Source: Macrostomum lignano
Lineage: Eukaryota
Direction of reading: 5' to 3'
Assembly (NCBI GenBank): GCA_002269645.1
Contig: NIVC01001603.1
Span: forward strand, 1 to 64,000
DNA length: 64,000 nucleotides
Part shown: in pieces, positions 776 to 64,000 of the stretch
How the letters are laid out: each line of letters opens with the position of its first letter
Position numbering within the stretch: position 1 is the first letter of the stretch
The notes under the pieces: generated by a model
The model's database searches: none
The model's input: only the letters and a program-made list of their open reading frames with translations
What the model was told of the DNA's origin: nothing
Made by a program: the position numbers and the translations under genes

Positions 776-1585
776 TTAGTTAACAGATAAAAATGGTAAT
801 AGCTTCTGCTACCCGCGGGGTCGACGTAAGCAATTTGATATTCATACGCTCAACTATAAGCTAGGCTAACTTTTCTTAACTAGATGCAGCAGTAGAGCTA
901 CCTGTAAAGGTGAAGGATCTACTTGGCTAGCGAGAACAAAGTCACTCCATAGTAGATAAATTTGAAAGTTTAAAAGTCTGGAATAATATGGCTTGCAGTG
1001 TCTCGCATTTTCGATAGAACTATACTTTCCTGGTAGATTTGCTACTCAAAACTACAGAATTGCAATCCTGCGAGCTAAGTAATGTTTATAAAGGTAAAGA
1101 TGGAAGCAGAATGCTTTCTTTCAGCATTTTTTTCTAGAAAGTTTCTGCTGTGGCTCTAACTGCGTCTATCTTTTAGACATGGTTAAAACTACTGCGAGAA
1201 AGCAGAAGTCTTTTCAAAAAGAGAGCCTTGAGGAGCTGCCAACTCATCCACATGCTTTAGCCTAGGGTGAAGCAGCCGGTAGGAATTTTCCATTGAACAA
1301 TTTACAGCCTTAAGAGCAAGTCGTATTCACAACTGCCATTGCATGAGAGCCATGCATCTGGGGCTCAGAAAACTTAAGCATGGGATTGGATAAGATATAA
1401 GGAACGGCGGCGTGCGCCTCGCAAGGAAGGCAGGAATAGACGATGGCGAGTGGCTGTCCTAGCAACCAGCTAAATATTTTACGCCCACATAGAATTCTTT
1501 CAAAAATAAGACGTAGAAGGTAACTGTAGGCATCCGACTTCTAGAGCTTGGAAAGATATTTGCAAGATCGCGTTAAAATTTCGTT

Positions 1586-4500
1586 ATGGAGTCAATAATT
1601 TTCGGATTGTTAATTCTTCTGGTCTGTTGCTGTATTTGCTTCGATGCTGCTCAAGGTAAGTCAATTGATCTGCATAATAATGGATTCTGTATTATCCGTT
1701 CAAGTCAAGGAACTGCAATATTTTCCACCTCAAATTGGTAGATGGCTTCGGGTCAGAGTGGAAGGACAGAAAAAAGATGAGAGATGAGACGCGACAAACA
1801 GGATGAGAGTAGAGAAAAGGCGAGAAGAGGTGGGAGAGAGGGGAGAGAGGAGAAAAGGGGAGAGAGGAGAGAGGCGAGAGAGAGAGAGAGACTCTCTACC
1901 CGACGGGCCGGATAGAGAGAGGCTTCACGGGCTGCATGCGGCCCTCGGGCCGGAGTTTGCCGGCCCCTACTCTAAGTGAACGTTAGCGGTGTCAGTGACT
2001 CCGGCTGACAAGTTAAGCATCAGCGCCAAGTCGTGCGGCCTACACAACTGGTGCAGACGGTGCTACTAACAGGTATCCTGCCTGCAAGGAGAAGCAGAGA
2101 CCAGGAGATTACATAAGTGCAGCTTTTTTAACGCTCTACAATCGCTTTGCAGGATCCTGCAATCCTGCTCGCTACACGCAGCACAATGGTGTCCTTACGA
2201 TCAACTCCGGAGTCAGCAGCCAAGTCAGTAACATCTCTGGAGTGGAATCCCTGCAGGGTTGCCTGACTCTGTGCCGGATGAGGGACTGCGTTGCTCTCGA
2301 GTACCGACCGAGCAGCGGTCTTTGCCGGCTGGTGACTGTCTCAAAAGGATCCAGCGAGTCCAGAGTCCTGGGGACAGAGCCTGGCTCTGAAGTTTTCAAG
2401 CTGAAGAATTTCGACTCTGTGATTAATTCGATATTAAGCACCAACATCACTCTTCTCTTCACAAGTAAGCCTTGCTTTTCGTTTTAAAAGTATTTTGTAA
2501 CCATAGTTAAGTAAAAATTAATTTGACCACAAATTTCAGACACCAGCACTGGTCAAAACGGCAGCATACAGCAGACAACGATAAACGTTACGGGCTGCTA
2601 TCGAATTGAGATTGCTGGAGCTAAGGGTGGTAGCAACTTTGACAGAGAAGAATATGGCGGTAGGGGAGCCCTGGTCACTGGAAATGTCAGCCTGACGGCC
2701 GGAAGCGTGCTGTCCATTCTCGTTGGTCAGGCTGGCGGTCACGCGAAATTCGATTATGTTGGAAGCGGCGGCGGCGGTGGAAGTTTTGTGTACCGTGCAT
2801 CGGACAGTGAGCCGCTCATGGCGGCTGGCGGTGGCGGCGGAGCCTCCAGGGACAACCATGGTTCGTTGAACTGAATTTTACTTTTTGCTCGTAAATACTG
2901 ACTGCTCGTATCTTAACGTGTAATTAAAAAGAAGATTCCAGAATAGCTTACTTCAATTAAATCAATTTTGAGGCACAATTTTCGACTCGATACTCAAAAT
3001 AAGAACACTTTAAAGTTGATTTTTTAAAAGAACATCTACATACGCTTCTACAACTTTAAACACTCGTTTAGCTTCGAAGTTTCTAGCTTGTATAGGTGAA
3101 AACCATTTCCAGAGTAGATTGACAAGAAAAAGTTAAATTATATTTTGCCAATTTTTACTTAGGTAGTCCTTATATGGACCTAGTCTGTTAAATTTATAGT
3201 GTTATGACGTCGGAGCGCATAATGGTACTATAAAAAACCTAAAGTGTTTTAAGTCCACTGAAAAATGGTAAACACCTTTTTTCAGGACGCCACGGTGAGG
3301 CCGGAAGAAATGGTTCAAACTCAGGTGGCTCAGACACGGTAATTTTATGACAATTTATTTTGATACGAGCGTAATACTCGATGATAATTAATAAGTCTTG
3401 ACGCTCAACGGTTTTGACAAACCTCAGAACAAGCTTTTTAATTAAGTTTATCACTCTATATTACAAAAAAACCTTAAAATTCAACTCTAAAGTTGGATTC
3501 ACAGTCGATCATTACGGTCCGGAAAGTTTTTTGCACCAAAGTATTAACGTAGAAATGTTCAAAGAGAGACCAGAAACAATTAGAATAAACCGGATTAGGA
3601 CCTGGATTGCATCAAATCTTGACACGATTGTGATGTTCATAAAGTACTTTCATTTATTCCGAATTTTACACAGTTCGTTCTGTATCAAATTAGGTATTGC
3701 GCAGCCTACAAAAAAAATAAGCCTACACTGTTTATGCATTAGTAATATTTTAGTAGTAGAAATGAGGTTTTTAAATATTTAAATGTGAATCATTCCTTTG
3801 CCTGGTGAGTATTGAAGACCACTAGCTTGTTTTAGTTGTAGTAGTTGTAGTACTTAACGAGCTCTATTACATTTAGAACTATATAACTGTGACTCGACCG
3901 CCAAAAATACTCTAGAGAAGAGCTGAAAAATTGAAATGTAAAATTAACAAATATCACTACTATTTTTAGCATTTCTTGATATTTTTCTAATGTTAAAGTC
4001 TCAGAAGATAAAATCTTACAAATAATTAGGACGATATTTTTTGTTGATTTTCTACTATTAGTAAGAATAAAAGGAAAATACGGTAGGAAAAACCTAAAAA
4101 CTCCTATTAGGACTGCTATTTGTTACTCACGACAACACACAACCATTTTATACAGCCCTCTGAGATCGGCATAGGAGGCATCAATGGACAACCGGGCAGT
4201 AATGTTCCGTCTAATGCGCCCTCAGGCGAAAATTATGGTGGCTGCGGCGCTGGCTGGAAGGGTAGAGCAGCCGTTGCGACCAGAGGCGAAAATGGTGGTG
4301 GAGGTGGTAGCAGAGATGAAAATTGGATTGGCGGCTCCTCCAGCCAAGGTTCCTTCTACGGCTTGGGCGGCTTCGGTGGCGGCGGAGGAGCTGCTACGGG
4401 CGACGGTAGTACCAATGGTGGCGGCGGAGCTGGTGGCGGCTACAGTGGAGGCGGAGCCGGACTGAGAGAAGACTTTTCTGGCAGAGGCGGCGGCTCCTTC

Positions 4501-4605
4501 TGCGGCGGTAGCGGCTGCGTGGCCACCACTGGCGGCAACACGAACAGTACCCAAGGATTTGTTAAGATTATGTTTGATTCTGTTATCCCATACACATGCG
4601 CTTGA
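1586..4605 (+). CDS. Paralog A: secreted PAN/Apple-like + ALK/LTK-like glycine-rich domain protein (~401 aa)
   Basis: Exons 1586-1655 (MESIIFGLLILLVCCCICFDAAQG, signal peptide), 2153-2464 (PAN-like, GCLTLCRMRDCVALEYRPSSGLCRL), 2540-2860 (FTNTSTGQNGSIQ...TGCYRIEIAGAKGG...RGALV.GNVSL..GSVLSILVGQAGG...GGGGGSFVY...LMAAGGGGGA), 3286-3338, 4156-4605 (GGFGGGGGA...GGGYSGG...GGGSFCGGSGC...GFVKI). All introns are GT-AG with matching phases; 1206 nt, no internal stop. Confidence 0.85.
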
Positions 4606-6274
4606 AGTCTTGAAGTCTAGAAAATAATCGGGGATTTGGAGAGCACAGGGTGACGGTCAAAAGTAACACTCATTACAGCTAAAGCCAAACAAAAAAACTT
4701 TGTTTAGAAACTTCAAAAAGTGTCACAGGGCGAATAATAATGGAATCTTCGGGGAATTAACGGGAAATTAACGAGGGGTTAACGGGAGCGCCAGATGAAA
4801 CCGCTATTCGCAGGTAAAGGGACGGTTAAGAACAAAGCATAGTACCCACAAGCGTAGGTTGTGCGAAGCGTGCGAATAGAATATATGTTATTAGTCTAGA
4901 TATCAATGGCTAAAATATGTTTTACTAAATGTTTTACTCATTTATTTACTAAAGCCGCAAAATGTAGATTCTTTTTGTTTTTTGTTTTTTTTAATCTGAA
5001 AATTTTAAAAAGTTTTTTTTGAAAATCTACGTACGTTTGACTAGTCGGTAGCGTGAATATGTGACGCACCTAAATTATAGGCGACCAAATGTTTCAGCAA
5101 GGCTATGCAGTTTGAAGCGATTGAATTTCTTCATTGAATTATTGAGTAGTACTAGCTTTCCACTACTGTCTAACAAAATTTCTTTATAAGATAGATGTCC
5201 CGCTATAAATTTTCCGTCCTACATTCACAATAGCATAGTTTGTCTTTATCTAGTTATACCATTAATGTATACCATGTTAATCTATCTATCGATTTTTACC
5301 TTATGCGTATACGTACTTATGCGTTTCCTAATGTCAAGACCATAACGTCACGCTTGTAACTCTTTGCACACTTCAATGCACCTATATTTGCTATATAGTC
5401 AGTTGCCCAACCCAGATGTTGGTTTTCTACGATGTTGCTAAAATATACGAAAGAATTCCTTATTTCTTTTTTTCATTAACCTCCATAAAGTGCATTTCGA
5501 TCTCGACTCTTTCTCAATCTGAGAAACAACAAACTTCTTATGGTAATTTATCGGTTCTAGGACTTACAACCATCCAGTTCTCCTCAGCTGTCATTGTTCT
5601 CAGTCCTGCTACAGTTGGAAAAATTTAAACTAAATTTAACTGACCAGCAATTACACAATTCAAAAAATTAAAAATATCAAAACTGAATACAACAGGAAAT
5701 TTAGCATTTTAAAAAATAGAAGTGTCTTGTAAGCGCCTAGAGTCACGTATAGTGGCCGTAAATATCATTCAAAGGTATTTCAACAGTGAACTGGCGTTAC
5801 CATAGATGTTAAGCCTAATTTTATTTATCGGTTTAGCACTCACTAGGCTGCTTTGTTTCATAGCTTCAACTGTTCTTAGGCAATGTAGCTCGCTTAATAA
5901 ACAACAAATAAATGAAGGTGATAATCAACATGTTTTATACTGTTATGTGCTTAATTTTTTACTCGGCATTTAATGCATCGGCATTAAAACATGTTGATAA
6001 TCACCTTCATAATCACCTTCATTTGTTTGCTGTTTATTAAGCGAGCTACATTGCCTAAGAACAGTTGAAGCTATGAAACAAAGCAACCTAGTGAGTGCTA
6101 AACCGTATTTTTCGGTTCTTCGAAATTCTCCATGATTAGCTAGTTTAGCTTCTTTGAAATTTCACTTTTCAAAAACGCAATTTTACTCCTCTGAAAGGCA
6201 GTGCATGTAAATCATACTTTCAGAGTGCACAGAGTAGTACAATTTTAGCAAAGTGAAACGCCATCCCTTTTCAG

Positions 6275-7045
6275 AATCTCTTCAGCATCCTTAGAGGGTG
6301 CAACAGGTTCAATGAAAAACCCGAACTGTCAGCTTTCATTGGCGCCCTGAGATCAGTAGCGGCTGGCGGGCTCTCTAAGCCGGATTCATCGGCTAGGAAC
6401 TGTGAGGATGACGGCTGCTCAGCTGCGATCTCAGCTTCCGGCGCATCAGCTTGCGCATCAGTAGGACGAGACGACAGCAATGCTGCAACCAGTGACTGGA
6501 CACCGCCGAGTGAAGCCTCTGGCAGCAATTCAAACGAATCAGCGATCCCGCTGCTGCACGAACCGATAGAAGGCCTGGCTACTGTCCAAGATGATGCAGT
6601 ACTGAACGAGGCCACTGAATACGTAGCTGGTTATGTGCTGAAAAAGAGTGGCGTATTGGACTGCAGCGACTGCAGGGCGGAGCTGACAGTGTCACTTCCG
6701 TCTGGCTGTCACATGCAGCACAAGCGTCTGCCTCACGCAGTCATCGGCCTCACGCATCCTTCACCTGCGGCTTTGGGTGAGTTCTGCAAGATGGAGGCTG
6801 CCTTCGTTGCGCAATCGCACAGTTTTATTGTGCAGCCGCAGGTAGCTAAACGATTGGCTGCTTTGTTCACAGCTGCAGCAGTTGCACTGCCGGCGTGCAG
6901 CTCACACGCTGCACATGTGCAGCGTCAGGTATGCAGCACGTTTGCACAGCTGCGACTGCATCATTGGTGCCGCTGCGAGGTGAGAAGCCTGCGAGCAGCG
7001 ACGAGCAGGAGCAGCACGCTGCGAAAGTTTCACAAACTGCGATGA
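6275..7045 (+). pseudogene. C-terminal exon of a P-element/THAP9-like transposase
   Basis: Acceptor cccttttcag, then an open frame NLFSILRGCNRFNEKPELSAFIGALRS...RNCEDD...EYVAGYVLKK...CSDC...GLTHPS...C..H...FAQLRLHHWC, typical of P-superfamily C-termini. No N-terminal or catalytic exons found. Confidence 0.7.
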
Positions 7046-7560
7046 GCTGATTAATTGATGAGAAATCATTCTATTTAGATAAAAAAATATGGAGTATATA
7101 ATAGCTTGTATTTGCTAAGTAGTTAACTGCAATTATATGGCCGTCAATGCAATCTAAAGCATTCGCAGTATTGCTTTTTGTCGTAGATATTGTCACAGAC
7201 GTGTTTCCTCCTTCTTCTAGATCCCACTAGATGTCACCAAGTTGTCGCAGACGTAATCGTTCCTAACTGCGATTTCACCGTAAAGCCACCGAGTCTTTAC
7301 AGACTTTCTGGTTCTTATCACTAAGCTGCCTATTTCTAGTAGTATTGGCTGCCCTAAACTATGACCTTTCTCTAATTTCACACGATTTCTCGGAAACCTT
7401 GTGATAGCGTGTAGTGCCCGAGCGGTAAGACACTGTCTAATTCCCTAGTTTAGTCCGAAAGCCTAGCGTTTTCCGAGGATCAAGGGTGTCCAGCAGTAGC
7501 TAATGCCTAATCTCCTAGCGCCTAATACCTATTATTAGCCAGTACGGCTTTCTTAGAGTC

Positions 7561-7787
7561 TGTACGACCTTAAATTTCTCCTTATTTTTAGACCTCTATC
7601 TTGGATCTCCACGACCTCTAGTTTCTCCCTATTCAGATCCCTAGTTCTGGGTCTCCACGACCTCTGGTTTCTCCCTATTCAGATCCCTAGTTCTGGGTCT
7701 CCACGACCTCTGGTTTCTCTCTATTCTGATCCCTAGTTCTGGGTCTCCACGACCTCTGGTTTCTCCCTATTCTGATCCCTAGTTCTG
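7561..7787. repeat. 46-bp tandem repeat, about 5 units
   Basis: Unit ctccacgacctctggtttctccctattcagatccctagttctgggt starts at 7607, 7653, 7699 and 7745, with a degenerate unit at 7561. No spacers. Confidence 0.9.
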
Positions 7788-8429
7788 TATTCGTACAAAG
7801 AACTAAGACTCGCAGGTTTTAACTTACGTTTTGGTTTGAATGTCAAACGCTGCTTCTCCGATTGAGAGCGAGCTCGCGAAGATTCGCGGAAGAGCAAGTT
7901 ACTTTTATTTTTGGTAAATTGTTTCGTTTATATAGGGGATAAAACTCAATTTGATTGGTTGAAATTAATTATAACAAAAATAGTTTACGAAATTTTAACA
8001 AAGTATTAAACTCCATTGGCTGAGATTATTTAAAACAAAACAATTTAGGGATTTAAACAAGGAAATTCACTGATTGGCTGAGTAAAAATAGCTCATTAAA
8101 CCCGCTTAAAACTACTATTAGTAAGAATAAAAGATCGACCCTATTACAATATTATAGTTAAAAGTTTATTTTTGCTAATAATATCATAATACAATTGCTG
8201 CATTGTATTCATCTTGATTTTTAATTTTTTAAATATAAAAAACGCTAAAATGTTTTATCACTACTAAGCAGAAAGTAGAATAAACTGTCATGTTGTGAAA
8301 ATTAGCCTGAGTGGCCTATCTAGTGTTTATAGTATGTGGTAAGCCCTGACGATGTCCATTGTGGACGAAATGCATCGGCATTAAAACATGTTGATTATCA
8401 CCTTCATTTATCAACTGTTCTTATTCACG

Positions 8430-8612
8430 CTCGGTTTTAATAGACGGACTTGATGATTGACCACCTGGTTGAAGACCCTGCGATATTTAACATGATTTTG
8501 GACGTCAAGCTGAATATATCGATCAAAAGCTGAGAAGATTTTCCTGTAACACGAGCGATATTCTCTCAAGCGAAGCCAGCGCGTTTTAGAGTGCTTGCGT
8601 CAGTCTTGCCTG
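8430..8612 (-). pseudogene. Crypton-like tyrosine recombinase C-terminal remnant (left-arm copy)
   Basis: Reverse complement reads KTDASTLKRAGFA*ENIARVTG... and is homologous to the better-preserved copy at 27805-27969. Confidence 0.45.
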
Positions 8613-8619
8613 GTCGTGA

Positions 8620-8835
8620 GACCGATCTGCTGCTTTGGCACGCTATACGCACGAAGCACCATTGGGTGCACGGCCCTCACGACCTATGGTAGTCGAAAGC
8701 CTTCCAGGCTTTCCAGAGCAATCAGGCTCGACTGGCGGGTCCACACTTTCTCGATGACTCGGCGAAGAGCCTGGATCTGCGCCACTGTGCCTAGATGGGG
8801 CCGGAACCCATTCTGCTCAACAAGTAGCATACCAT
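8620..8835 (-). mobile_element. Degenerate RTE-type LINE reverse transcriptase fragment
   Basis: Minus strand VEQNGFRPHLGTVAQIQALRRVIEKV...KAFD...VLRAYSVP, with frameshifts (RT domains 2-3). Confidence 0.65.
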
Positions 8836-10519
8836 TGTAATTTGCCTTGTGGTCATAACAGCTTGCATTCTCGCTAATTACACGTAAGCCAACCTTGACT
8901 TGCTCCGAATTCCCCCCGACTAATAAAGTTAAATATTTTTACCTAATGTTCAAAAACCCCTTTTGTAGAGCTTGAATCACTCAAACTTTAGTTGGATAGC
9001 TCAATTAATGTTTCATGTAGGAAATTTCTTACATCCGGCCAGTCAGCTGTACGATTGCTTAATTAATTATGCATACATAGTAGAAGATATGTGAAAAACA
9101 TTTTAAACTTACATGTAAGTTAAAAAGTCAAACACCCACTAAGTTTATATCTGCTGTTTTGCTAAACGCAAGCAAGCATAAAAGTCTCAATGGAGAATAT
9201 ATTGTGGTATAAGATAACAAAGCTATGACAAATATGATATTGAAGGATGAAGCGAGTCTTTCTTTATGTATACTTCATATTTATACTGTAGTATGTACTA
9301 GTCTTGTTTTCGGTTTTGTAGAGAGTTAAACAAGTCCGATTGAAACAAGCTTCTGCGCTATATGCCAGTATATGCTGAATGAGAATGTGAAAACTTCATT
9401 CAAAGCCTATTTGCATGCTAAATTTCTTCATAGACAGATGTGTCAATAAACGCGGGAACAAGTCTCAGAATTTTAATGCTTTCAAAGATACCGTAAAAGC
9501 CTTCTCTACCATCTAGATTCAGTACATAAGTCAACTTTGATTCAGAAAGTTTTTGCAATCAGCGAGCTTGTAGGATAATCCTGCTTTTTAGTAATAAAGG
9601 AAGAAATGGGTTTGATTTTTTACTCTATTCTTCTAACTTCATGCTTCAATTGTTTTTAGTAGCATCGCTTTAAAAAATCTAGCTGGTGTACAAGCAGGCG
9701 TCAGCTTTATGATCTCTATCTATAGTGTAGTGAATTATTTATCTCTGTCCAATACTACTCGTACATGCATACTTTTGTCTGAACCAACAACTATTTGTGC
9801 ACTTTTTACAAAATGGTTAAATTACGAGCGTATAAACATAGAATACTTCGAATTCGATAGATAATGAATTTCTTGCGTTCTCTTCCAAAAAGTTATTCGA
9901 TCAAGTTAAATGATGTCGGTTGCTTCTTTAACAATCAAAAGTTTGTGTAGTTTAGAACCGAATAAAGGAATTAATTAATTTTATCCTCAATTGAAAATTA
10001 CTTCTCTCATTTTTCTGTCAGCCAGAGGTAAAAAACGCTCTACTGGTACGTTAAACCTGAATGAGTACATCAATAGTAAAGCAATTGTTTATGGTCATGT
10101 ATTGTAACGATGGAGCAAAACTACGACGTATCTGTGCATAATTCGAGCTATTACTGTAGTTTTCTGTCGCTTGTCGGAAAATCTGATGACACTGATGGAA
10201 CCGTTTTTAAACCTTTCAGCTCGTCACGCAGTCAGCGCATTTTTGAGATGACAGAAAGCTAGCTTTTTACCATGATTCAGTCAACAGTGTATATTACTGG
10301 CTTTTACCAAAGGAAGACACTGAATCAAGTTTTTTTATTTTTATTGACAGGACAGAAGATGTTTCTAGCTTTTAGCTTTGCAGAATTTTGGCGTATGGAT
10401 TATTATTCAAGTTTCAGTGAAGTATAGCAGAAAACACGATGCCAGATGACCCGCACACTCTATGTATTAACTTTTGGTCTTACTGTAATATTACTGCAGC
10501 AATCATGTTGGATAGTTTA

Positions 10520-10640
10520 GTTTTGAGAAAGCCGCACACGGATACGTACGAAGGCACACACTCAACTGGTTTTATAGCGGCCCTGCCTTTCAAATCACCA
10601 GGTATATATAAGCATACACCTTGGGGCTCTTTACAGATAC
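10520..10640 (-). mobile_element. Old SINE body fragment (family of 18993-19358)
   Basis: ggatacgtacgaaggcacacactca...agcggccct matches the SINE body. Confidence 0.4.
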
Positions 10641-10993
10641 TCGTACTATGGCGCGAGAGTCTATGATACACCAGATATTGCACATTTTTTGCTCCATAAA
10701 TATACTTCTATTAGTTAAAATTTCTTTAATTCTATAGAAAAACGTGTCAAGAAAAAATTCGACCGTTTTGGGACCAAAAAAACTGCAAAATTCTGACAGC
10801 CAATCAGCGCCGCTACAGCGGGAGACGTATCTTTCGAGCTCTTAGCTGAAGCCAATAGCATCCTGGATGCAGAATGCAGTTTCTGAAATAGGTTAATGTA
10901 TTCCCCTTTAATGGATTAAAATGCCACTTTCCTTACAACTCGTGTCAAGCCGTTTGTTCAAGACATAGACATTTGTTCAAGCTTCGCACAAAT

Positions 10994-13622: not shown

Positions 13623-14189
13623 CCACTCTAGCTGTAACTTTTTCGGCAATACAAGTGCCTAACTTATGCGGAAACATTCGAACTCTGGTTACAGCTTGCA
13701 ATGACAACAACAGTGTCGAATAAAGATTTATGGTTGTTGCTAGGCAAAAGATAGAAAAAAGCCATCCAGTCAAAATACATTTAAGAGTTAATTTCACTAT
13801 GGCTTCAAATGAAGCAGGATGATGTGTAATAGCTAAACTCTGAGTATCGAAGAAAATTTGTTTGAAAATGGGAATCATCTGATGAGTTGGTTTAGCTGGT
13901 TCAGCAACTGCACTATCTTGAAGTCGAGCTCTCCAACAGCAGCGCACCGAGGCAAATCGGAAACTCCTCGGGTCTCGCCGCATTTGCCGCCTTCGCTTAT
14001 TTTTTTAGTGACCTTCTAGTGAAAGAAGCTTAAGAATTACTAAGATTAAGATTCGTTTTTTAATTAAAACCTTCGTGACCGTGAGCCAGATTTAAGCCGC
14101 TACTGAATTTAAGATTTACACGTCTCTGCAATTTACTCCGTCTTTGTCCTTGATCTAATAGGGTGAGGTGAAGCGTGTGATTTTTTTAT

Positions 14190-14500
14190 CAGGGGCGTCG
14201 CCATGGATTTTATGGTGGGGGGACAAAGCAAAGAATTTTACATGTACATGCATCGGACTAAATTCCTACATGTACACGATTTAGAGAGTCGGTGTTGTCA
14301 GCGCTCATTTTAGCGCCGCAGGTATTGATTTTAGCACTGCAGGTGCTATATTTAGGCGCCCTAAAACAAAATTATTGCTTTCCACAACGTGTCACATGGT
14401 GGGGTGGAGGGGGGGGGGGACAAACCATTGGCCTGTCCCCCCTTGGCTTTTATTTGGGGGGACATGTCCCCTTGTCCCCCCCCCCCCAGTGGCAACGCCC
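14190..14500. mobile_element. Probable degenerate MITE
   Basis: Ends caggggcgtcgcca / tggcaacgcccgtc are imperfect inverted repeats with G/C-run subterminal blocks. No clear TSD. Confidence 0.4.
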
Positions 14501-21115: not shown

Positions 21116-21194
21116 CAATAAGTAGCTAGTGCGACAATTTCCTTAGCATTATAGTGGCTAAGGATTCGCTTATTTTTACGTTTGAAATTGTGTA

Positions 21195-23690: not shown

Positions 23691-24277
23691 TTTAGAAGTT
23701 TTGTGTTTTTAAGGTGTTTTAATAAAAAAAAATCTTTTTTGCCCTACTAAGATTCGAACCCAAGTCGCTACATTAGCATTCCAGTCTGTTCGCATCTGGG
23801 CTATCTTTTTCAATTGGAGAACATAAATTGTGGCCCTTATAATTCAATTCTTACAGCAAGTCAATTGGAGTAAAAAGTTATGACATAATCAATTTCTCAG
23901 TCAGCCAGAATCAGTCTCAATTTAAGTTGCCAATATGGTTACGCAATTTCATTCAAGTCGTGTGTGCATTTCTTTGACACTGTTTTCAACTTGTTGTGAT
24001 GCAATCTTTATCACAATCGGAATTCAGCCAGTCAGTTTTTTCTCTAGCATTCTTACAATGCATTTCAAGTCGAAAATTTTGCTTGACCTTTGCAAAAAAG
24101 CAGGTTTTTCGAATATTTAATCCCTTTAACATTGAGCAATTTCTTAGCCAGGATGCATGTACCGTCCCAGGAAAATTTCTGATCGAATGGTGCAAGTTTG
24201 AAGAAAATCGGTTGAGCCAATTTTTCTGAAATCTATCGCATACCTACCCACAGACAACTCATTTTTAGTATATTGGA

Positions 24278-27081
24278 CTAGCAATCTTCGCCCCCCGTTG
24301 GGGGACATCTGTATAGAATCTCTGTTCTCTACAAGTAACAAAAAGATAGCGAAATAAAGCCTTCACAAAGAAAACAGACAAAATACTCAAATGAAGTGCA
24401 ATGCAAAAAGAAATCATCGCAAGACAGCAAGCATCCCCCACATAGCAAGCATCCCCCAGATTGCAAGCATCCCCCGGATAGCAAGCATCCCCAGATAGCA
24501 AGCATCACCCAAATAGCAAGCATCCCCCAGATAGCAAGAATCCCCAGATAGCAAGCATCCCCCAGATAGCAAGCATCCCCCAGATAGCAAGCATCCCCCA
24601 GATAGCAAGCATCCCCCAGATAGCAAGCATCCCCCAGATAGCAAAAGCATCCCCCAGATAGCAAGCATCCCCCAGATAGCAAGCATCCCCAGATAGCAAG
24701 CATCCCCCAGATAGCAAGCATCCCTCAGATAGCAAGCATCCCCAGATTGCAAGCATCCCCCAGATAGCAAGCATCCCCAGATAGCAAGCATCCCTCAGAT
24801 AGCAAGCATCCCCCAGATAGCAAGCATCCCCCAGATTGCAAGCATCCCCCAGATAGCAAGCATCCCCCAGATAGCAAGCATCCCCAGATTGCAAGCATCC
24901 CCCGGATAGCAAGCATCCCCAGATAGCAAGCATCCCCCAAATAGCAAGCATCCCCCGGATAGCAAGCATCCCCCAGAAAGCAAGCATCCCCCAGATAGCA
25001 AGCATCCCCCAGATAGCAAGCATCCCCAGATTGCAAGCATCCCCAGATAGCAAGCATCCCCAGATAGCAAGCATCCCCCAGATAGCAAGCATCCCCCAGA
25101 TAGCAAGCATCCCCCAGATAGCAAGCATCCCCAGATAGCAAGCATCCCCCAGATAGCAAGCATCCCTCAGATAGCAAGCATCCCCCAGATAGCAAGCATC
25201 CCCAAATAGCAAGCATCCACCAGACAATAAGTAGCTAGTGCGACAATTTCCTTAGCATTATAGTGGCTTCTTTAAAATTCGCTCACTTTTACGTTTGAAA
25301 TTGTGTATCTTTTATGTTTGACATGGTGGCTCTTTTATGTTTGAAATGAAGTCACTTATATGTTTGACATGGTGAATCTTTTAAATGTTTTACAGGTTGG
25401 CTCTTTAATTTTCAACATGGTGGCTCTTTTATGTTCGACATAGTGGCTCCTTTATGTTCGACATGGTGGCTCTTTTATGTTATACATGGTGGTTCTTTTA
25501 TGTTCGACATGGCGGCTCCTTTATGTTCGACATGGTGGCTCTCTAATGTTTGACATGGTGGCTCCTTAATGTTTGACATAGTGGCTCTTTAATATTCAAC
25601 AAAGTGGCTCTTTAATGTTTGACATAATGACTTTTTAATGTTCAAAATGGTGGCTCTTTAATGTTTGACATGGTGGCTCTTTAATGTTTGACATGGTGGC
25701 TCTTTAATGTTCGACACGATGGCACTTTAATGTTTGACATGGTGGCTCTTTAATGTTCGACATGGTAGCTCTTTAATGTTCGAAATGTTTTTTTTTGTTT
25801 TACAGTGGCTCTTTAATGTTCAACATGGTGGCTCTTTTTTGTTTGAAATAAAGTCTCTTATACGTTTGACATGGTGGCTCTTAAATGTTCGGCATGATGG
25901 CTCTTTAATGTTCGACATGAAGTCACGTATATGTTTGATATAGAGTCACATATATGTTTTACATAGTGGCTCTTTTATGTTTGACATGGTGGCTCTTTTA
26001 TGTTTGAAATGGTGGCTCTTTTATGTTTGAAATGGTGGCTCTTTAATGTTTGACATGGTGGCTCTTTAATGTTCGACATGGTGGCTCTTTACTGTTTGAC
26101 ATAGTGGCTCTTTAATATTTAACATAGTGGCTATTTAATGTTTGACATGGTGGCTCTTTAATGTTTGACACGATGGCACTTTAATGTTTGACATGGTGGC
26201 TCTTTAATGTTTGACATGGTGGCTTCATTATGTTTACATGGTGGCTCTTTAATTTTTGACATTGTGGCCCTTTAATGTTCGACATGGTGGTTCTTTAATG
26301 TTCGACATGGAGTCACGAATATGCTCGACATGGTGGCTCTTTAATGTTTGACATTGTGGCCTTTTAATGTTCGACATGGTGGCTCTTTGATGTTTGACAT
26401 GGTGGCTCTTTAATGTTCGACATGGAGTCGCGTATATGCTTGGCATGGTGGCCCTTTTATGTTTAGCATTTTGTGTTTTGAAGGTGTTTTGAACCCAGGT
26501 CACTACATTAGCAGTCCAGTCTGCTCGCATCTAGGCTATCTCTTTTTTTAATCTGAGAACATGAACTGTGGCCCTTTGAATTCAATTCTTACAGCAAGTC
26601 AATTGGAGTAAAAAGTTATGACATAATCAATTTCTCGGTCAGCCAGTATCAGTCCCAATTTAAGTTAGCAATATGGTTACGCAATTTCTATCAAGTAGTG
26701 TGTGCATTTCTTTGACACTGTTTTCAACTTTTTGTGATGCAATCTTTATCACAATTGAAATTCAGTCAGTCAGTTTTTTCTCTCGCATTTTTACAATGCC
26801 TTTCAAGTTGAAAGAGCTGCTTGACCTTTGCAAAAAAGCATGTTTTTCGAATATTTAATCCCTTTAAAATTGAGCAATTTCTTAGCCAAGATGCATGTAC
26901 CGTCCCAGGAAAATTTCTGATCGAATGGTGCAAGTTTGAAGAAAATCGGTTAAGCCGTTTTTTCTGAAATCCATCTCACAGAGACACACATTTCATTTTT
27001 AGTATATAGGATTTTTAGTATATTGGATTCTGGAATCTATCTCACACATACACACAGACATTTCATTTTTAGTATATAGGA
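24278..27081 (-). mobile_element. Non-autonomous Helitron, copy 2 of the tandem dimer
   Basis: Same termini (5' TCCTATATACTAAAAATGAAATG; 3' hairpin + CTAG). 18-bp array ~24422-25220, 23-bp array ~25310-26460. Stacked extra 5' ends at ~27000-27081. Confidence 0.85.
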
Positions 27082-27364
27082 AGCTGACGCCTTCTTATAC
27101 AACAGCTCAACTTTTGAAAGCGATGGGACTAAAAGCAATTGGAGCATAAAGTTAGAAGTATAGACTAAACAAATCGAACCCAGTTCTTCCTTAATTTACA
27201 AAAACTAGGATAATCCTACAAGCTCGCTGGTTAAAAAAACTCTCTGAATCTAACTTAACTCATGTTACTGAATCCAGATAAAAGAGAAGGCTTTTACGGT
27301 ATCTTTGAAAGCACTAAAATTCTGAGACTTGCTCCCGCATTTATTGACACACCTGTCGTCTAAA

Positions 27365-27655
27365 GACATTTAGCCCGGCCGCACGGCGACCTCAGCCTGC
27401 GAGAGCTGGAAGCAGCGGGAGGCCTGCTGACCCTCTCGGACGGAATCCCGTCCATGCTCTGCTCTCCGCTCAAATTCAAAACCAGCATTCCACCACGTCA
27501 TGAATCAAGAGACAACTGGAAACCCCATGAAATCCACTGCTTCACTGATGGGTCCCAAATCTGCATCGTGTTTGGAGGAAGAACTGAGGCGACCTACTCC
27601 CAGCACACCGGCACCTGCTCCACCGTCTTCCAGAACGAAGTTCTCGCCATCAGCT
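27365..27655 (+). mobile_element. Non-LTR retrotransposon RNase H fragment (I/Loa/Tad-like)
   Basis: EIHCFTDGSQ...STVFQNEVLAIS matches the FTDGS / TVFQAE..AI motifs of LINE RNase H. Confidence 0.7.
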
Positions 27656-27804
27656 TTAGACAGAGGCAGTGACACTAAAAGACACAAAAACACTCTTAGA
27701 CATAATAAACACACTATTTTGGATTGATTCAGCCCATCCCTCTGTCGAAGAAAATTTTAGAAATTCCAGATAATAGTTAAATAGTACACTCAACAGTCTC
27801 TAGC

Positions 27805-27969
27805 TAAGCAAGACTGGCGCAAGTACCCTACATCGTAAGAGGGTACGATCGTGCTGGCTTTGCTAGAGGGGACATCGCTCGTGTTATAGGACACTGTTCG
27901 ACAGCTATTGAGCGATATATTCAGTTTGATGCCCAAGATCATGTTAAAATATCTCATGCTCTTCAATAA
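27805..27969 (+). pseudogene. Crypton-like tyrosine recombinase C-terminal remnant
   Basis: KTGASTLHR[insertion]AGFARGDIARVIGHCSTAIERYIQFDAQDHVKISHALQ*: GH..Y catalytic tail typical of Crypton/DUF3504-type YRs. Confidence 0.55.
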
Positions 27970-28574
27970 GGTAGTCAGCCATCAAGTCCGCGTCTATTTA
28001 AACCGAGCCTGAACGCTTTGTTGAAGCTATGAAACAAAGCGACCTAGTGAGTGCTAAACCGGCAAAGAAAATTAGACTTAGCATCAATAGTGACGCCAAC
28101 ACTGTTGAAATACTTTTGAGTGATATTTACGGCCACTATACGTGACGCGAGGCGCTACAAGACGCTTCTATTTTTTACTATGCTAAACTTCCTGTTGTAT
28201 ACGGTTTTGTTATTTTAAATTTTTTTATATTGTTTAATTTTTGATCAGTTAAAATGTTAGCTTAAATTTGTCCAACTGTAGCAGGACTGAGAACAATGAC
28301 AACTGAGAAGAACTGGATGGTTCTCAGTCCTACACCGATAAATTACCATAGGAAGTTGTTGTTCCTCAGATTGGGAAAGAGGCGAGATCGAAATGCACTT
28401 TCTGTAGGATAATAAAAAAGAAATAGAGAATTCTTTCGTATATCTTCAGCAATATCGAAGAGAAAAAACATCTGCGTTGGGCAAACTGACTATATAGCAT
28501 ATGTATATGCAGGCAAGTGTGCAAGAGTTACAAGCGTGACGTTATGGTCTTGACATAAGGAACGCATAAGTACG

Positions 28575-28915
28575 TATAAAGTAAACCTAGGTAAACATGA
28601 CTGAAATAGGCAAACGTGAGTAAATAGGTTAACATAGGTACGTAGGTGAATATTTAGTGTAGTTGAATGAGTAAAAAGGCAAACATGAGTAGATAGGTAA
28701 ATATAAGTACATAAGTAGGCAAAACATTTTAGGCAAACATTTTGGAAATTTACGTAGGTAAACCTATGTACATATAGGTAAACATGAGTTAATAGGCAAA
28801 CTTGAGTAAACAGGCAAACTTGAGTAAATAGGCAAACATAGGTAAATCTTACATAGGTAAACATGAGTAAATAGGTGAACATGAGTAGATAGGTAAACGT
28901 AGGTACATATGTAAA
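28575..28915. repeat. Degenerate ~18-20-bp minisatellite (ataggtaaacatgagtaa-like)
   Basis: Direct reading. Confidence 0.75.
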
Positions 28916-28991
28916 CATTATTACAGATAACGCAGGAAAAGTTATTGGACAATTAGCTGTTAGTTTTATAGTCTGATATTACAAAATTATT

Positions 28992-29694
28992 CCTTTTTAC
29001 GTTCTATTTGATAAAAACTGCAACCAATTTGGCCACGGCTCAGCCTGACGCAGCCGCAGCAATTTTCCATAGACAGCCACCGCTAGCGGCAACCAATTTG
29101 GTAAAAACTGCGAGCTATTTTGCCAGCTTGAAGATAGCAGCTCAATAGCATAACAATAACGATAAAGAATGTTAACAATACATGCACGAAGTCAGAACAT
29201 TATGTCCTCAGCATTCAAGCACCGATTGAAGTACGTCTGGGAATGGTTGATCCAGCGCAGGCACTTGAGAGGCGTGAGAGGCAGTAGGTTGACCTTCGAC
29301 GAATTGAACAATGGTGTCCACCATAGCCTCCGTCAGCGCCATCCTCTTCACTCCTCCTTTTGGCAGAGTGCCAACTCTACCAGTTCGTTCATACGTGGTC
29401 ACGATGTTCCTCACTGTCGGTTTCTTCATCCCCATCATTCTGCCAAGCTCTCCCCAGTCGTCGCCACTCCTGTACGCTCTCACGATTCGCTCTCGATCCA
29501 GCTGACTTATCTTTTGGTACGGCCCACGATTCGCCATCAGAGCAGCTGCTATCTTCAAGCTGGCAAAATAGCTCGCAGTTTTTACCAAATTGGTTGCCGC
29601 TAGCGGTGGCTGTCTATGGAAAATTCTATGTCTATGGTCAGGCTAAGCCGTGGCCAAATTGGTTGGAGTTTTTATCAAATAGAACGTAAAAAGG
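28992..29694 (-). mobile_element. Internally deleted Tc1/mariner-superfamily element with ~150-bp TIRs
   Basis: Long inverted repeats (cctttttacgttctatttgataaaaact.../...atcaaatagaacgtaaaaagg). Inside, an N-terminal HTH (MANRGPYQKISQLDRERIV...TVRNIVTTYERTGRV...KGG) joins a C-terminal remnant (TPLKCLRWINHSQTYFNRCL). The DDE core is missing. Confidence 0.75.
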
Positions 29695-30435
29695 TATATT
29701 ATGGAAGCTATAGATTAATGGTATAATTAGATACCGAAATACCATGTTATAGTGAATGCATATATCAAGAAGGGAAATCTATAGGGGGACATCTATCTTA
29801 TAAAGCAATTTAGTCAAACAGCAGTGGCAAACTGGTACTCAATAATTCAATGAGGAAATTCAATGGCTTTAAATTGCATGGCGTTGCTTAAACATTTTTG
29901 TCGCCTATCATTTCGGTGCGTCACATATTCACCCTACCGACTAGTGGAAACTACGTAGATTTTCAAAAAAACGTTTTCAAATTTTTTTGAATTCTAAAAA
30001 ACAATGATAAAAGAATAAAAAATCCTACATTTCTGTGGCTTGAGTAAAGATATGATCGAATAAAACATGTTGCAGTCACTGATATCTAGAATAATAATGT
30101 ATATGTAGTATATTGCTACATTATTCCTAATATGTAGGATTTTTGGTTATACGAGTTGTATCGGCTTCGCATAACCTACTTGTTCTTATTCTTTGTTCTT
30201 AACCGTCTCTTTACCTGAGAATCTGGCACTCCCGTTCATCCCCCATTTATTCCTGTTAATTCCCCGTCGATCCAATTATTATTCCCCTGTGACGCTGTAA
30301 TCTTTCTCTCGGTTCCCTTGGCTTTGGTTTGCTGGATAAGTTTCTAAACAAACATTATATTTTGCTTTGGCTGTAATGAGTGTTACTTTCGGCCGCCACC
30401 CTATGCTCTCCAAATCCCCGATTAATTTCTAGACT

Positions 30436-32938
30436 TCAAGCGCATGTGTAGGGGATAACAGAATCAAACAGAATCTTAACGAATCCTTGGGCACTGTTCG
30501 TGTTGCCGCCAGTGGTGGCCACGCAGCCGCTACCGCCACAGAAGGAGCCACCGCCTCCGCCAGAAAGATCGTCATCAAGTCCGGCTCCGCCTCCGCTGTA
30601 GCCGCCACCAGCTCCAGCGGCACCTACCGCTGTGCTACCGTCGCCCGTAGCAGCTCCTCCGCCGCCACCGAAGCCGCCCAAGCCGTAGGAAGAGCCTTGG
30701 CTGGAGGAGCCGCCAATCCAATTTTCATACCTGCTACCACCTCCGCCACCATTTTCGTTACTGGTCGAAACGGCTGCTCTACCCTTCCAGCCAGCGCCGC
30801 AGCCACCGTAATTTTCGTCTGAGTCCGCACTAGACGGATCATTACTGCCCGGTTGTCCATTGATGCCTCCTATACCGATCTCAGAGGGCTGTATAAAATG
30901 GTTGTGTGTTGTCATGAGTAAAAAATACTCATAGTTTTAATAAGACAGTAAATTTATCGAGCATAGTTTTTTCTTTAGCTATATTTTTTTAATAGTAGAC
31001 CATACGTATCGTTATAAATAATTGTAACATTTAATATTCTGCAATTTTTACTATAAGAAAAATATCAAGAAATTACCTCGCTTGAGCCATAAGACTTTGA
31101 ACCGTTTCTTCCAGCCTGACCGGGGCGTCCTGAAGAAAATTTTTAAACCTTTTTTAGTGGATGCAAATAACTTTAGGTTTATTTAGTACCATTATGCGTT
31201 CCGGTGCCACAACACTATAAATATAACAGACTAGGCTCGTGCAGAGACTACGAGCTACCAAAAAAATTAACAAAATACAAATTAAATTTATTTCACCGAT
31301 CTACTCTGGAGATAGGTTTTCACCATGTACGCGTTAGCAATTCTTTTAACTTCAAAGCTGACGATTTTTTTTCATTTGTGAAAGCGCAGATGTTTCATTA
31401 AAAATAAACTTTAAAGCGTTCTGATTGTAAGTGTGAAATCAAAATTGTGCCTTAAAGTTTATATCCTTCGAAGTAAGATATTTTGGAATATTCTTACTGA
31501 TTAGTACGTATTGAAAAGGAAACTACTTAAAATGAAAAGGTAAACGAACCATGGTTGTCCCTGGAGGCTCCGCCGCCACCGCCAGCCGCCATGAGCGGCT
31601 CACTGTCGGATGCACGGTACACAAAACTTCCGCCGCCGCCGCCGCTTCCAACATGTTCGGATCTCGCGTGGCCACCAGCCTGACCAACGACAATGGACAG
31701 CACGCTTCCGGCCGTCAGGCTGACATTTCCAGCGACCAGGGCTCCCCTACCGCCATATTTTCCTTCGCCATAGTTGCTACCACCCTTGGCTCCGGCAATC
31801 TCAATTCGATAGCAGCCCGTCACGTTTATCCTTGTCTGCTGTATGCTGCCGTTTTGACCAGTGCTGGTGCCTGAAATTTGTTGTCAAATTAATTTTTACT
31901 TAACTATGGTTACAAAATGCTTTTAATACGAAAAGAAAGGCTTACTTGTGAAGAGAAGAGTGATGTTGGTGCTTAATATCGAATTAATCACAGCGTCGAA
32001 ATTCTTCAGCTTGAAAACTTCAGAGCCAGGCTCTGTCCCCAGGACTCTGGACTCGCTAGATCCTTTTGAGACAGTCACCGGCCGGCAAAGACCGCTGCTC
32101 GGTCGGTACTCGAGAGCAACGCAGTCCCTCATCCGGCACAGAGTCAGGCAACCCTGCAGGGATTCCACTCCAGAGATGTTACTGACTTGGCTGCTGACTC
32201 CGGAGTTGATCGTAAGGACACCATTGTGCTGCGTGTAGCGAGCAGGATTGCAGGATCCTGCAAAGCGATTGTAGAACGTTAAAGAGCTGCACATATGCAA
32301 TCTCCTGGTCTCTGCCTCTCCTTGCAGGACGCCTACTCCCCACTGACAGAAACAGATATGACGGGATGGTGTACATTAGCACCGCCTGCACCAGCTGTAC
32401 ATGTATGCGCCGCACGACTTGGCACTGATGCTTATCTGGTCAGCCCAAGTCACTGACACCGCTAATATTCACTTGACCCAGGGGCTAGTACACCCGGGTC
32501 CGCGGGCCACATGCAGCTCACAAAGCCTCTTTATCCGGCCTCGGGCCCTTTGAAACTTCACAATAGCAATCCGGCCTGCTTAGGGTTTGTGAATTGTGTC
32601 TATTCTCATTTCTCTCGGTCTCTCCTCTCTCTGCTTCTCTCTCCTCTTCTCTCCCCCACCCTCTTCTCTCCTCTTCTATTCTCTCATCTAATCTCTCGCC
32701 TCTACTCTCTCATCTCTTATCTTACATTTTCTCGCCTTCCACTCTCATCTGCCCCTCAACTATGAGCCGAATTCTTTACATGGTAGCTGGCGTCGTGATA
32801 CGAGAAAAAGAAAATTGCTGACTCTTAGATAATGCAGAATCCCCTATAATCCAAACCAATTGGCTTACCTTGGGCAGAATCGAAGCAACTACAGCGACAG
32901 ACCAAAAGCATTAACAAGCCGAAAATTATTGACTCCAT
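30436..32938 (-). CDS. Paralog D: secreted PAN/Apple-like + ALK/LTK-like glycine-rich domain protein (~402 aa), inverted partner of A
   Basis: Exons 32869-32938 (MESIIFGLLMLLVCRCSCFDSAQG), 31946-32257, 31550-31870, 31077-31129, 30436-30888. GT-AG, 1209 nt open. Confidence 0.85.
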
Positions 32939-34814
32939 TGGGAATTTTTAACGCGATCTTGCAAAGATATTTCCGGGCTTTCAGTAGGATACCTTCTATT
33001 TCTCATTTTTGAAGGAATTCTGTGTGGGTGTAAAATATTTTGCTGGTTGCTAGGGCAGCCACTCGCCATTGTCTCCCCTTGCTTTCCTTCCGAGGCGCCG
33101 GCCGCCCTTCTTACCTGGCCCAATCCTCAGCAAGGTTTTCTGAGCCCAGAATGCATTGGCAGTGTGGAGACGCCTCACTCCAGAGGCTGTAATTTTTCCA
33201 TGGAAAATTCCCAGTGACTGCATCGTCTTTGGCTTAAGCATGGGGATGGGTTGCCAGCTTTTCAAAACTCTCTGTTTGAAAAGACTTCTGACTGGCAGTA
33301 ATTTTAATTGGCAGTGGAATGGCTTAGAATAGGGGTCCCCAACCTTCTACGGGCAGCGGGCCGCATTGTTTAGCAATTTGACAATCATTATTCGCATTTT
33401 TTATGCAGAACAATCCATTACTACAAATTGTTTTAGGATCGTCAACTCCATTGACAACTGGCTTCGGGTGTTCGGGCCGCATGCAAGTAAAACATTGCAG
33501 TTTTCTTAGCTGCCATCGTAAATACCTTGAGCTTAGGACTTTAACCGGTAGCCTTGAAAACTCTTAGAAATTTAGTAAAAATCAATATTGGTTGCTTCTT
33601 GGAATTGCCCGACTCTTCAACGAGATAAGGAGTCCTAATCTCCCATTCTATCTATCTTTGTACTGTTGTCTGCTTTCTGTTTTTTTACTGAGGCCTATTC
33701 ACTTGCCTATAGCTTTTTCCACTTGGCTTACTGAGGCATGTTTTAAGAAGCAGTCGACGTAGCCCCTGACGTCTCACCATTGTTTTACCTGCAAGTCAAA
33801 TGACAAAACAGTAAAAAATTGTACCCCTCATGTGTCAGCACGTAAATTTTTTGCCACAGTAAAATGATTTCCATTCTAGAGGCTAAATTTGGCTTTTTAT
33901 CTCCGTCTTCTATTGTTTAGTCCAAAAAAGGGATTCGAGATTCCGGAATCACTCCACGTGCTGATTAAAAAGATATAAAGGTAATGCATATTGGAGAGAA
34001 ATGGTTAATTCTTACAGAGTGCTAAATAGTCCACTCGGATAAAATTTTGATTCACAGAAAGGGCCTGCTTACAGACCGTTAACAATCAAATATACTACTA
34101 TAACGAGTGAAAGGACAAATATTGCTATATCTTGGACGCAAAATTATGCAAACCACGATCCTAAGCGTGTACAACTATTTCTGCACAGTATCAAAGTGAC
34201 CGTGTGCAATCAAATTTCAAAAAAATATAATTCTATAAAATATAATTTTTTCTCTTTATTGCGACACCACTCAAGCACCGATACTTAGTTTCTGTTGCTT
34301 TGTTTTATTTTGATTTCTACCGGTAGAATCAAATTGGCTGGATGGGTTGTAGTTAAGCAGATGCAGAAGTTTGCGGTGCAGGGCGTTTCATTTGGGCTAG
34401 CAAGAGTGTTCAATGTCTCAATCATCACTTCCATCACCTTTGAATCCTTATTTTATCATCATTGTACATAGGGGCACCGCGATGAAGCATTAACAATGGT
34501 CCTTGCTGCACGACGTCAGCGCGTAACGCGCACTCGTGTTTGGCCAGTATTTCACTCCGTTACCTACTATACAGCCCACCATTGTTAAGTTTAGCATTTG
34601 AATTGGCTTGCTTAACTGTGTAGAATACGGAAACGAACTCGTTCGGCTCGCTGGTGCTAATGCGCGGTCGAAGTTCAATGCTGGATTCCAGAACGATGGG
34701 TTCAATAACTTTGCGCTCTCCAACTCTGAGTACGACTGAGTACGACTCAGTACGGTAGTACGACTCAGTACGGCAGTACGACTCAGTACGGCAGTACAAC
34801 TCAGTACGGCAGTA

Positions 34815-44186: not shown

Positions 44187-62187
<18,001 letters not shown>

Positions 62188-63996: not shown

Positions 63997-64000
63997 TCAC

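Follow-up and report, generated by a model that had tools for sequence, protein, structure and literature searches.

An old inverted duplication of PAN and glycine-rich-domain genes in Macrostomum lignano, with probable local exchange between its arms

How related genes come to stand as two mirror-image pairs around a spacer, and whether such pairs still trade sequence after their surroundings have drifted apart, are the questions raised by a locus of Macrostomum lignano. The window analysed here is a stretch of 64,000 nucleotides (assembly GCA_002269645.1, contig NIVC01001603.1, positions 1 to 64,000 of the forward strand) containing five copies, A to E, of a gene family whose open reading frames (ORFs) in the two arms encode a PAN/apple domain (PF00024) and an ALK/LTK-type glycine-rich domain (GRD, PF12810). 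An earlier note, made from the letters alone, had proposed that an inverted duplication (A-B, spacer, C-D) explains the cluster and allows gene conversion from arm to arm. In our judgement the locus is probably a real, old inverted segmental duplication with the history proposed below, local conversion included. The duplication accounts for four of the five copies of this lineage-expanded family of secreted proteins, and E stands outside it.

Arms, boundaries and linkage

The window was compared with itself by blastn and then realigned block by block, anchored on the matches; a global MAFFT alignment of both arms was dropped because in the insertion-rich middle it matched up unrelated stretches, and alignment from anchor to anchor was used instead. 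Nine collinear reverse-complement blocks link 1184-13697 with 33307-17562, at E-values from 1.8e-35 to 0, which is far beyond chance. These antiparallel blocks are 1183-3356 with 33307-31059, 3971-5271 with 31073-29709, 5308-5870 with 28578-28020, 8424-8583 with 28013-27850, 9417-9707 with 27374-27081, 9707-9848 with 20466-20333, 9859-10103 with 20254-20011, 11698-12091 with 20010-19640 and 12298-13694 with 18980-17562. The six pairs of arm coordinates in the earlier note were all recovered as parts of this longer chain, and its arrangement of A and B, a spacer, and C and D is borne out by the collinear antiparallel blocks and the sharp ends of both arms.

The collinear blocks and their ends delimit a left arm (1184-13697, 12.5 kb) with genes A and B, and a right arm (17562-33307, 15.7 kb) with pseudogene C, gene D and 8.3 kb of private insertions. 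The spacer between them (13698-17561, 3,864 bp), which carries a gene resembling G-protein-coupled receptors (GPCRs), has a counterpart in neither arm. The ends are sharp: in Smith-Waterman comparisons both the outer flanks (1-1182 against the reverse complement of 33308-34500) and the inner flanks (13695-14700 against 16560-17561) scored the same as shuffled controls.

From arm to arm 6,424 nucleotides could be aligned, with 87.5% identity, a Kimura two-parameter (K2P) distance of 0.138 and 618 gap columns; identity is about 80% when gaps are counted. The non-coding share is about 4.2 kb, with mismatches at 15.1% of the aligned sites (634/4,185) and 598 gap columns. Arms mismatched at about 15% of non-coding positions, each with its private decay, agree with the old age proposed for the quasi-palindrome. 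Identity along the arms is very uneven, with a near-identical tract at 2135-2540. Inside the arms one segment is not homologous (833 bp at 8584-9416 on the left, 475 bp at 27375-27849 on the right), and a sensitive alignment of these two stretches found homology limited to about 35 nt at the anchor edge.

Linkage of the arms has to be considered in the light of the host genome. M. lignano is a neopolyploid whose three paralogous genome copies differ by 2.2% in single-nucleotide polymorphisms and by 1.1% in coding sequence (PMC10733133). The arms are about seven to eight times as divergent as the subgenome copies (15.1% against 2.2%), and a mis-join of alleles or homeologues is ruled out by this difference. 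The other form of artefact would be an assembly chimera, in which two paralogous loci were falsely joined head-to-head at the inner arm boundary and so mimic a palindrome. The M. lignano reference has been called prone to errors: haplovariants are collapsed or expanded, and there are misassemblies (PMC10733133). One false join at 13697/13698 would by itself give the sharp inner boundary, and the left outer flank is only 1.2 kb long. Such a join would nevertheless have to fall exactly where homology with the other arm ends, or else truncate an arm, and the outer boundary is sharp as well, at matching points of both arms. False joins typically show low-complexity or repeat sequence, which is absent from both junctions, and a divergence of about 15% with many private indels greatly exceeds the 2.2% that separates the copies assemblers mix up. 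We consider a chimera distinctly improbable.

We infer one duplication event for both gene pairs. Two separate inverted duplications, one from A to D and another from B to C, could be argued from the non-coding K2P distance, which is higher around A and D (0.16-0.26) than in the intergenic DNA and around B and C (0.12-0.19). Against this, about 1.4 kb of the DNA separating the two genes (5308-10103) aligns as well, collinear and antiparallel like the rest, and is interrupted only by insertions with recognisable empty sites and by the one non-homologous segment described above. Separate events would not reproduce this order, orientation and spacing, and we give them hardly any credence in comparison with a single duplication of the two-gene block.

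The genes and local exchange between the arms

The five family copies were mapped by tblastn, with exons and ORFs. Each gene follows the same plan, namely a PAN exon, a short intron, a first GRD exon (GRD1), a mini-exon of 18 codons and a second GRD exon (GRD2); the mapped exons start at the PAN exon, and the 5' signal-peptide exon is outside the gene models. Gene A (2128-4605, plus strand) has its PAN exon at 2128-2484, GRD1 at 2548-2865, the mini-exon at 3279-3335 and GRD2 at 4132-4605, and its mapped exons are open. Gene B (11557-13622, plus strand) has these exons at 11557-11934, 12537-12866, about 13005-13060 and 13188-13622, all open. On the minus strand the mirror of A is gene D (30436-32300), with PAN at 32300-31926, GRD1 at 31862-31545, the mini-exon at 31133-31077 and GRD2 at 30915-30436. 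The mirror of B, copy C (17641-20010, minus strand, from tblastn and ORFs), is a pseudogene, which has lost the 5' half of the PAN exon, is interrupted by an in-frame stop in GRD1 and carries at least two frameshifts in GRD2. The fifth paralogue, gene E (40127-41507, minus strand), lies outside the arms in the same orientation as C and D.

Pfam recognised PAN_1 on the exons of D with 23.0 bits (gathering threshold 21.4) and ALK_LTK_GRD with 38.7 bits (gathering threshold 24.5), and ALK_LTK_GRD was also matched on the assembled D and B proteins. Over the GRD core the amino-acid identity is 88% between A and D and 84% between B and C, against 60-65% across the two pairs, and E is 58-61% identical to A-D. 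The distance between the pairs, set against the likeness within them, indicates that an older tandem duplication made the A/D-, B/C- and E-type genes.

Across the covered stretch (PAN from SCNPARY, GRD1 and a read-through tail) gene D is identical to the M. lignano protein A0A1I8JKJ3 in UniProt (P0001), which places the family in Macrostomum lignano. Weaker relatives found in the protein database search are mainly cnidarian and unnamed metagenome proteins. The ALK/LTK glycine-rich domain itself has hundreds of relatives of about 300 amino acids with 35-41% identity, in metagenome proteins, corals and anemones, some of them with a PAN domain; as a stand-alone secreted domain it has a far wider distribution than the receptor kinases that gave it its name.

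The UniProt cluster around D comprises seven distinct A/D-type predictions (P0001 and P0121-P0126). The intron read-through after GRD1 tells the type of locus, since it reads GSLN and a stop in A and GSFTFSF and a stop in D, and by this mark the variants fall into an A-type and a D-type set, near-identical within each, which is what two old paralogues present in about three subgenome copies each should show. The number of variants, seven, is consistent with two genes in three subgenomes.

The near-identical tract joins genes A and D. It runs from 2135 to 2540 on the left arm and from 32275 to 31870 on the right (31870-32275), covering the PAN exon, the 75-nt intron 1 and the start of GRD1, and shows 8 differences in 406 columns, with a perfect run of 195 nt, against a background mismatch of about 15%. 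Its flanks are 60-75% identical with gaps counted. The longest perfect run in 2,000 shuffles of the match and mismatch columns was 70, and at the non-coding rate a binomial model gives a probability of about 2e-20 for at most 7 differences over 406 columns (8 were observed).

Synonymous divergence (dS) and its ratio to non-synonymous divergence (dN/dS) were calculated for each exon by the method of Nei and Gojobori. For A and D, dS is 0.012 in the PAN exon (one synonymous and three non-synonymous differences, dN/dS about 1), 0.092 in GRD1, 0.157 in GRD2 and 0.57 in the mini-exon, the last resting on 18 codons only. Synonymous differences amount to 1/85 sites in the PAN exon against 30/212 in the other exons (Fisher P = 2.9e-4), and intron 1 is 93% identical, compared with 78-80% for introns 2 and 3. 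With dN/dS about 1, constraint on the protein cannot account for the identity of the tract. Identical synonymous and intronic sites, which protein constraint leaves unexplained, are explained by a recent non-reciprocal exchange, and we infer gene conversion as the cause of the tract.

The duplication could be real and the tract kept alike by selection or by a local mutational cold spot. The tract starts essentially at the 5' end of an exon and coincides with exons, and the PAN exon is nearly invariant across the seven UniProt variants, as either would predict. Neither fits the unchanged synonymous sites, the three of four exon differences that alter the protein, or the unusual likeness of the 75-nt intron within the tract. 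A second patch of high identity (12519-12818 with 18755-18456, 96%) falls on the GRD1 exon of B and C (dS 0.049, dN/dS about 1); it is weaker than the A/D tract, and C, one of the two partners, is already a pseudogene, which also speaks against selection. Mosaic variants of the A/D type exist as well: P0121 and P0124 carry D-type intron tails and yet have A-type residues at three sites each in the PAN and junction region, and at two diagnostic sites, L/P (column 59) and S/A (column 88), all four combinations are present among the UniProt variants. These apparent A/D mosaics lend independent support to exchange, as judged from the predicted proteins, and we regard selection or a cold spot as improbable next to gene conversion.

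The data support conversion that is local, with one clear A/D tract of about 0.4 kb (up to 0.7 kb) and the weaker B/C patch. The earlier suggestion of arm-to-arm conversion holds in this restricted form and fails as an arm-wide process, the arms being about 85% identical overall. The residual difference of 2% in the A/D tract is close to the divergence of the subgenomes, so that the last exchange would be roughly as young as the genome duplication.

Insertions, losses and the order of events

Each arm has decayed in private, by insertions with empty sites on the right and by an element with terminal inverted repeats (TIRs) and a 629-bp insert on the left. The largest insertion is a non-autonomous Helitron-like dimer at 20467-27081 (minus strand, 6.6 kb), present on the right arm only and made of two head-to-tail units. 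Its 5' end is TCCTATATAC, and the units begin with TCC(T/A)ATATACTAAAAATG. At the 3' end each has the hairpin CCCCCAACGGGGGG followed by CGAAGATTGCTAG, closing in GCTAG. The units are directly abutted, CTAG being followed at once by TCC, with the internal junction CTAG then TCCAATATAC at about 24277. Both units thus have the 5'-TC and 3'-CTRR termini with an upstream hairpin (TCCTATATAC at the head and CCCCCAACGGGGGGCGAAGATTGCTAG at the tail), and each holds arrays of an 18-mer and a 23-mer satellite. The empty site is kept on the left arm at 9706-9708, where GCTT^TATG equals the joined right-arm flanks without a target site duplication (TSD). The insertion was therefore between T and T, and differs from the A and T of classical Helitrons.

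Elements of Helentron type have been described with a T/T target, internal tandem arrays and tandem repetition of the whole element (PMC7492417). The dimer resembles the non-autonomous Helitron/Helentron elements of the Cg_HINE group of the Pacific oyster in lacking a TSD, in its T/T target and short 3' palindrome, and likewise in its internal tandem-repeat arrays and whole-element tandem repetition. It departs from the HINE definition as regards subterminal inverted repeats: in neither unit do the opening 120 nt share an inverted word of at least 8 nt with the closing 120 nt. With classical Helitrons it shares the 5'-TC and 3'-CTAG ends, and differs in the target, which is not A/T. Since no subterminal inverted repeats were found, the dimer is placed at the level of the Helitron superfamily only. 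A third Helitron-like copy is found at 62867-63997 (plus strand), in the opposite orientation, with the same 23-mer and 18-mer arrays and the 3' hairpin and CTAG (CCCCCAACGGGGGGCGAAGATTGCTAG); its 5' head is apparently missing.

Two further insertions are confined to the right arm. A tRNA-derived short interspersed element (SINE) of 366 bp at 18993-19358 (minus strand) has an A-rich tail (AATAAAATAAGTA) and a perfect TSD of 16 bp, ACTGAGATACGTAGCT, at 18977-18992 and 19359-19374; motifs like the A and B boxes (GTAGCCCAGCGGTAGCG and GGCTCGATTCCAAG) were seen by eye in its head, in which ARAGORN calls no tRNA. The 711-bp element at 28988-29698, derived from Tc1/mariner, has TIRs of 155 nt, of which 82 nt are 100% complementary, TA flanks and an ORF coding for a helix-turn-helix (HTH) region only. 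In Pfam this ORF reaches 26.4 bits for the general model HTH_28 (cut-off 25), and against the Tc1-specific Sleeping-Beauty HTH model it gave E 5.5e-7 and 29.7 bits, under the cut-off of 43. Pfam found no DDE domain in the element, which marks it as a remnant, and an 18-mer array (28588-28918) adjoins it. The labels given earlier to the right-arm elements, namely a Helitron dimer, a Tc1 derivative and a SINE, were all verified structurally, by ends and empty site, by TIRs with TA and HTH, and by TSD and tail, respectively. The right arm has lost sequence too: 1,594 bp of the left arm (10104-11697) are missing from it at the junction 20010/20011. This stretch includes the first half of the PAN exon of B, and is for this reason a deletion on the right and not an insertion on the left; the loss took the 5' half of the PAN exon of C.

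On the left arm the labels fared less well. A TIR element of 2.55 kb at 5871-8423, present on this arm only, has a perfect 30-bp inverted repeat (5908-5937 and 8382-8411) and is flanked on both sides by the 8-bp direct repeat (CAAC)TGTTCTTA. The matching site of the right arm has AAAGCG in place of a single TGTTCTTA, which does not tell whether the element arrived once the duplication was made or was excised on the right. Its 262-aa ORF had no Pfam match at E<=0.05 and no PDB match at E<=10, so that the P and hAT labels remain unverified; the TIRs and flanking repeat of the putative P derivative are thus unaccompanied by any transposase match. The same searches with eight other ORFs of private segments gave nothing apart from the Tc1 HTH. 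No hAT miniature inverted-repeat transposable element (MITE) was found: the 277-bp palindrome at 5829-6105 includes flanking sequence and is no simple MITE, and the other left-arm candidate, an unclassified 629-bp insert in intron 3 of gene A (3346-3974), is without TIRs. The palindrome has arms of 107 nt, 93% complementary, and holds the left flank 5830-5870, TGTTCTTA and the 5' end of the 2.55-kb element, followed by all three in reverse complement; 6064-6105, the reverse complement of the flank 5830-5870, is matched by 28020-28061 as well. Rather than a MITE, the palindrome seems to be a junction of transposon and flank folded back on itself.

The exact empty site of the Helitron-like dimer, the 16-bp TSD of the SINE and the 82 nt of perfect TIR in the Tc1-like element date these insertions after the duplication. 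The order of events at the locus is tandem duplication, inverted duplication, transposon insertions with the loss of C, and recent conversion at about the age of the genome duplication. In the history that we propose, an ancestral head-to-tail array of genes with PAN and ALK/LTK-type glycine-rich domains would have diverged to about 60% amino-acid identity. A two-gene block of about 9-10 kb with its intergenic DNA would then have been copied once, in reverse and 3.9 kb away, to give A-B, spacer and C-D, and from then on the arms would have evolved mostly independently, reaching the present non-coding mismatch of about 15%. The right arm may next have acquired the Helitron-like dimer, the SINE and the Tc1-like element, and C would have been killed by the 1.6-kb loss, the stop and the frameshifts; the left arm would have acquired the TIR element and the 629-bp insert. 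The inverted arms, being on one chromosome, could still pair, and at least one recent non-reciprocal exchange would have affected about 0.4 kb of A and D, with a weaker homogenised patch on the GRD1 exon of B and C. E, D, C and the GPCR-like gene form a head-to-tail series on the minus strand in which only A and B are inverted. This shared orientation would put the right arm in the ancestral context and suggests, as far as gene order goes, that the left arm is the copy. At a divergence of about 15%, with no interpretable microhomology at the junctions, template switching in replication, break-induced fold-back and repeat-mediated rearrangement are indistinguishable as the means.

Several observations weigh against this account. 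The linkage of the arms rests on a single assembly of a repeat-rich neopolyploid genome that contains known misassemblies, and, with only 1.2 kb of left outer flank in the window, the loss of homology there was tested over a short distance. Neutral divergence is uneven, with a non-coding mismatch of about 17% in the outer part (1184-5271) and about 13% in the inner part (5308-13697), which is not expected under a strict model of one event and no later conversion; rates may vary regionally, or earlier conversion towards the centre may have gone unrecognised, and the contrast is either a gradient of divergence or a sign of mixed history in the two-gene block. As to the exchange, the mosaic variants are protein predictions from a fragmented assembly, in which recurrent mutation or prediction errors could mimic it, and consensus polishing with mis-mapped reads could in principle have homogenised a short paralogous stretch.

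Palindromes of mammalian sex chromosomes are the obvious comparison. Large palindromes are defined by arms of at least 8 kb with at least 99% identity (PMC8327919), which on the mammalian sex chromosomes is maintained by frequent arm-wide conversion (PMC8327919; PMC8981503). Like those of the X and Y (P1-P8 on the human Y, 26 on the human X), the M. lignano locus has inverted arms longer than 8 kb (12.5 and 15.7 kb) around a spacer, with a gene family on the arms and a further gene between them, conversion from arm to arm, and structural changes in and beside the arms. It differs in that its arms are 87.5% identical (about 80% with gaps), well short of 99%, that conversion is confined to tracts below a kilobase and one arm gene is dead, and that the host is a hermaphrodite without sex chromosomes. 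There is no essential difference from ordinary inverted segmental duplications and tandem-inverted expansions of gene families in animals, in which a nearby reversed copy decays independently, receives transposable elements, may lose one copy to pseudogenisation and occasionally undergoes ectopic conversion of exons. The locus is best placed in this known class, as an old inverted segmental duplication of the ordinary sort in which some exon-centred conversion persists.

A broader version, in which the palindrome predates the whole-genome duplication, is present in all three subgenomes and reshuffles the secreted family by exon-centred conversion, with the A/D mosaics as its visible outcome, is in our view unlikely. 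If true, the locus would be an autosomal counterpart, in an invertebrate, of the palindromes on sex chromosomes, with conversion keeping only the ligand-binding exon while the rest of the arm decays. As an ordinary duplication the locus offers a compact natural case of inverted paralogues trading short tracts long after their overall homology has decayed. The conversion tract and the clean record of insertions are instructive and reveal no new mechanism. For the annotation of a neopolyploid genome, some caution follows: C is a pseudogene, the GPCR-like gene has a frameshift, and markers meant to tell the paralogues apart do not work in the converted exon.

The spacer gene and other features of the window

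The rhodopsin-type GPCR-like gene (15113-16286, minus strand) is split between two ORFs that overlap and differ in frame: close to 15625-15630 a 1-nt frameshift changes the reading frame within a few bases, which leaves no space for an intron. The frame-joined protein of 391 amino acids matches Pfam 7tm_1 with 38.9 bits (threshold 30.5) over model positions 1-235 of 260, and a search of 5.8 billion proteins returned no homologue for it at E<=1e-5. Either the gene is an orphan receptor that broke recently, or the frameshift stems from an assembly indel.

The spacer had been described as 3.9 kb of unique sequence with a GPCR. Length and gene are as described, the latter frameshifted, and the right 0.7 kb or so (16813-17504) is not unique, having copies elsewhere in the window. 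A CT-rich satellite (16813-16928) recurs at 39392-39647, and the block 16927-17504 recurs directly at 33726-34218 with 72-75% identity. This second copy sits 0.4-0.9 kb past the outer end of the right arm, and 16927-17504 adjoins its inner end. The pair is older than the arms, and may represent a dispersed repeat or what is left of the older tandem-duplication unit.

ARAGORN and Rfam found no RNA in the window. An 83-nt dispersed repeat (33363-33445 and 51953-52035, inverted, 96%), at which ARAGORN called no tRNA, lies 56 bp outside the outer boundary of the right arm. Three ORFs, at 34560-35081 (minus strand), 8687-8938 (minus strand) and 27376-27669 (plus strand), have by eye motifs typical of the reverse transcriptase or RNase H of non-LTR (long terminal repeat) retrotransposons (among them LLYNAETWTL, NGFRP...IQALRRVIEK and CFTDGS), and none of them gave a Pfam match. 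A 304-bp inverted repeat pair (36229-36532 and 46589-46892), 10 kb apart and 98.4% identical, is much younger than the arms, and a second tight pair is found at 47398-47530 and 47667-47799 (97.7%). The microsatellite (TGTC)n at 50909-51172 and its complement (GACA)n at 57990-58336 are inverted and 7 kb apart. Long arrays of a 15-mer (45602-45944), a 17-mer (53428-54121) and a 19-mer (55118-55957) are also present, and GC skew is strong at 52-56 kb. Finally, a 252-aa ORF at 38067-38825 (minus strand) contains about 23 copies of the pentapeptide AETPR, encoded by a 15-mer array, and matches Pfam GETHR with an E-value of 8e-12.

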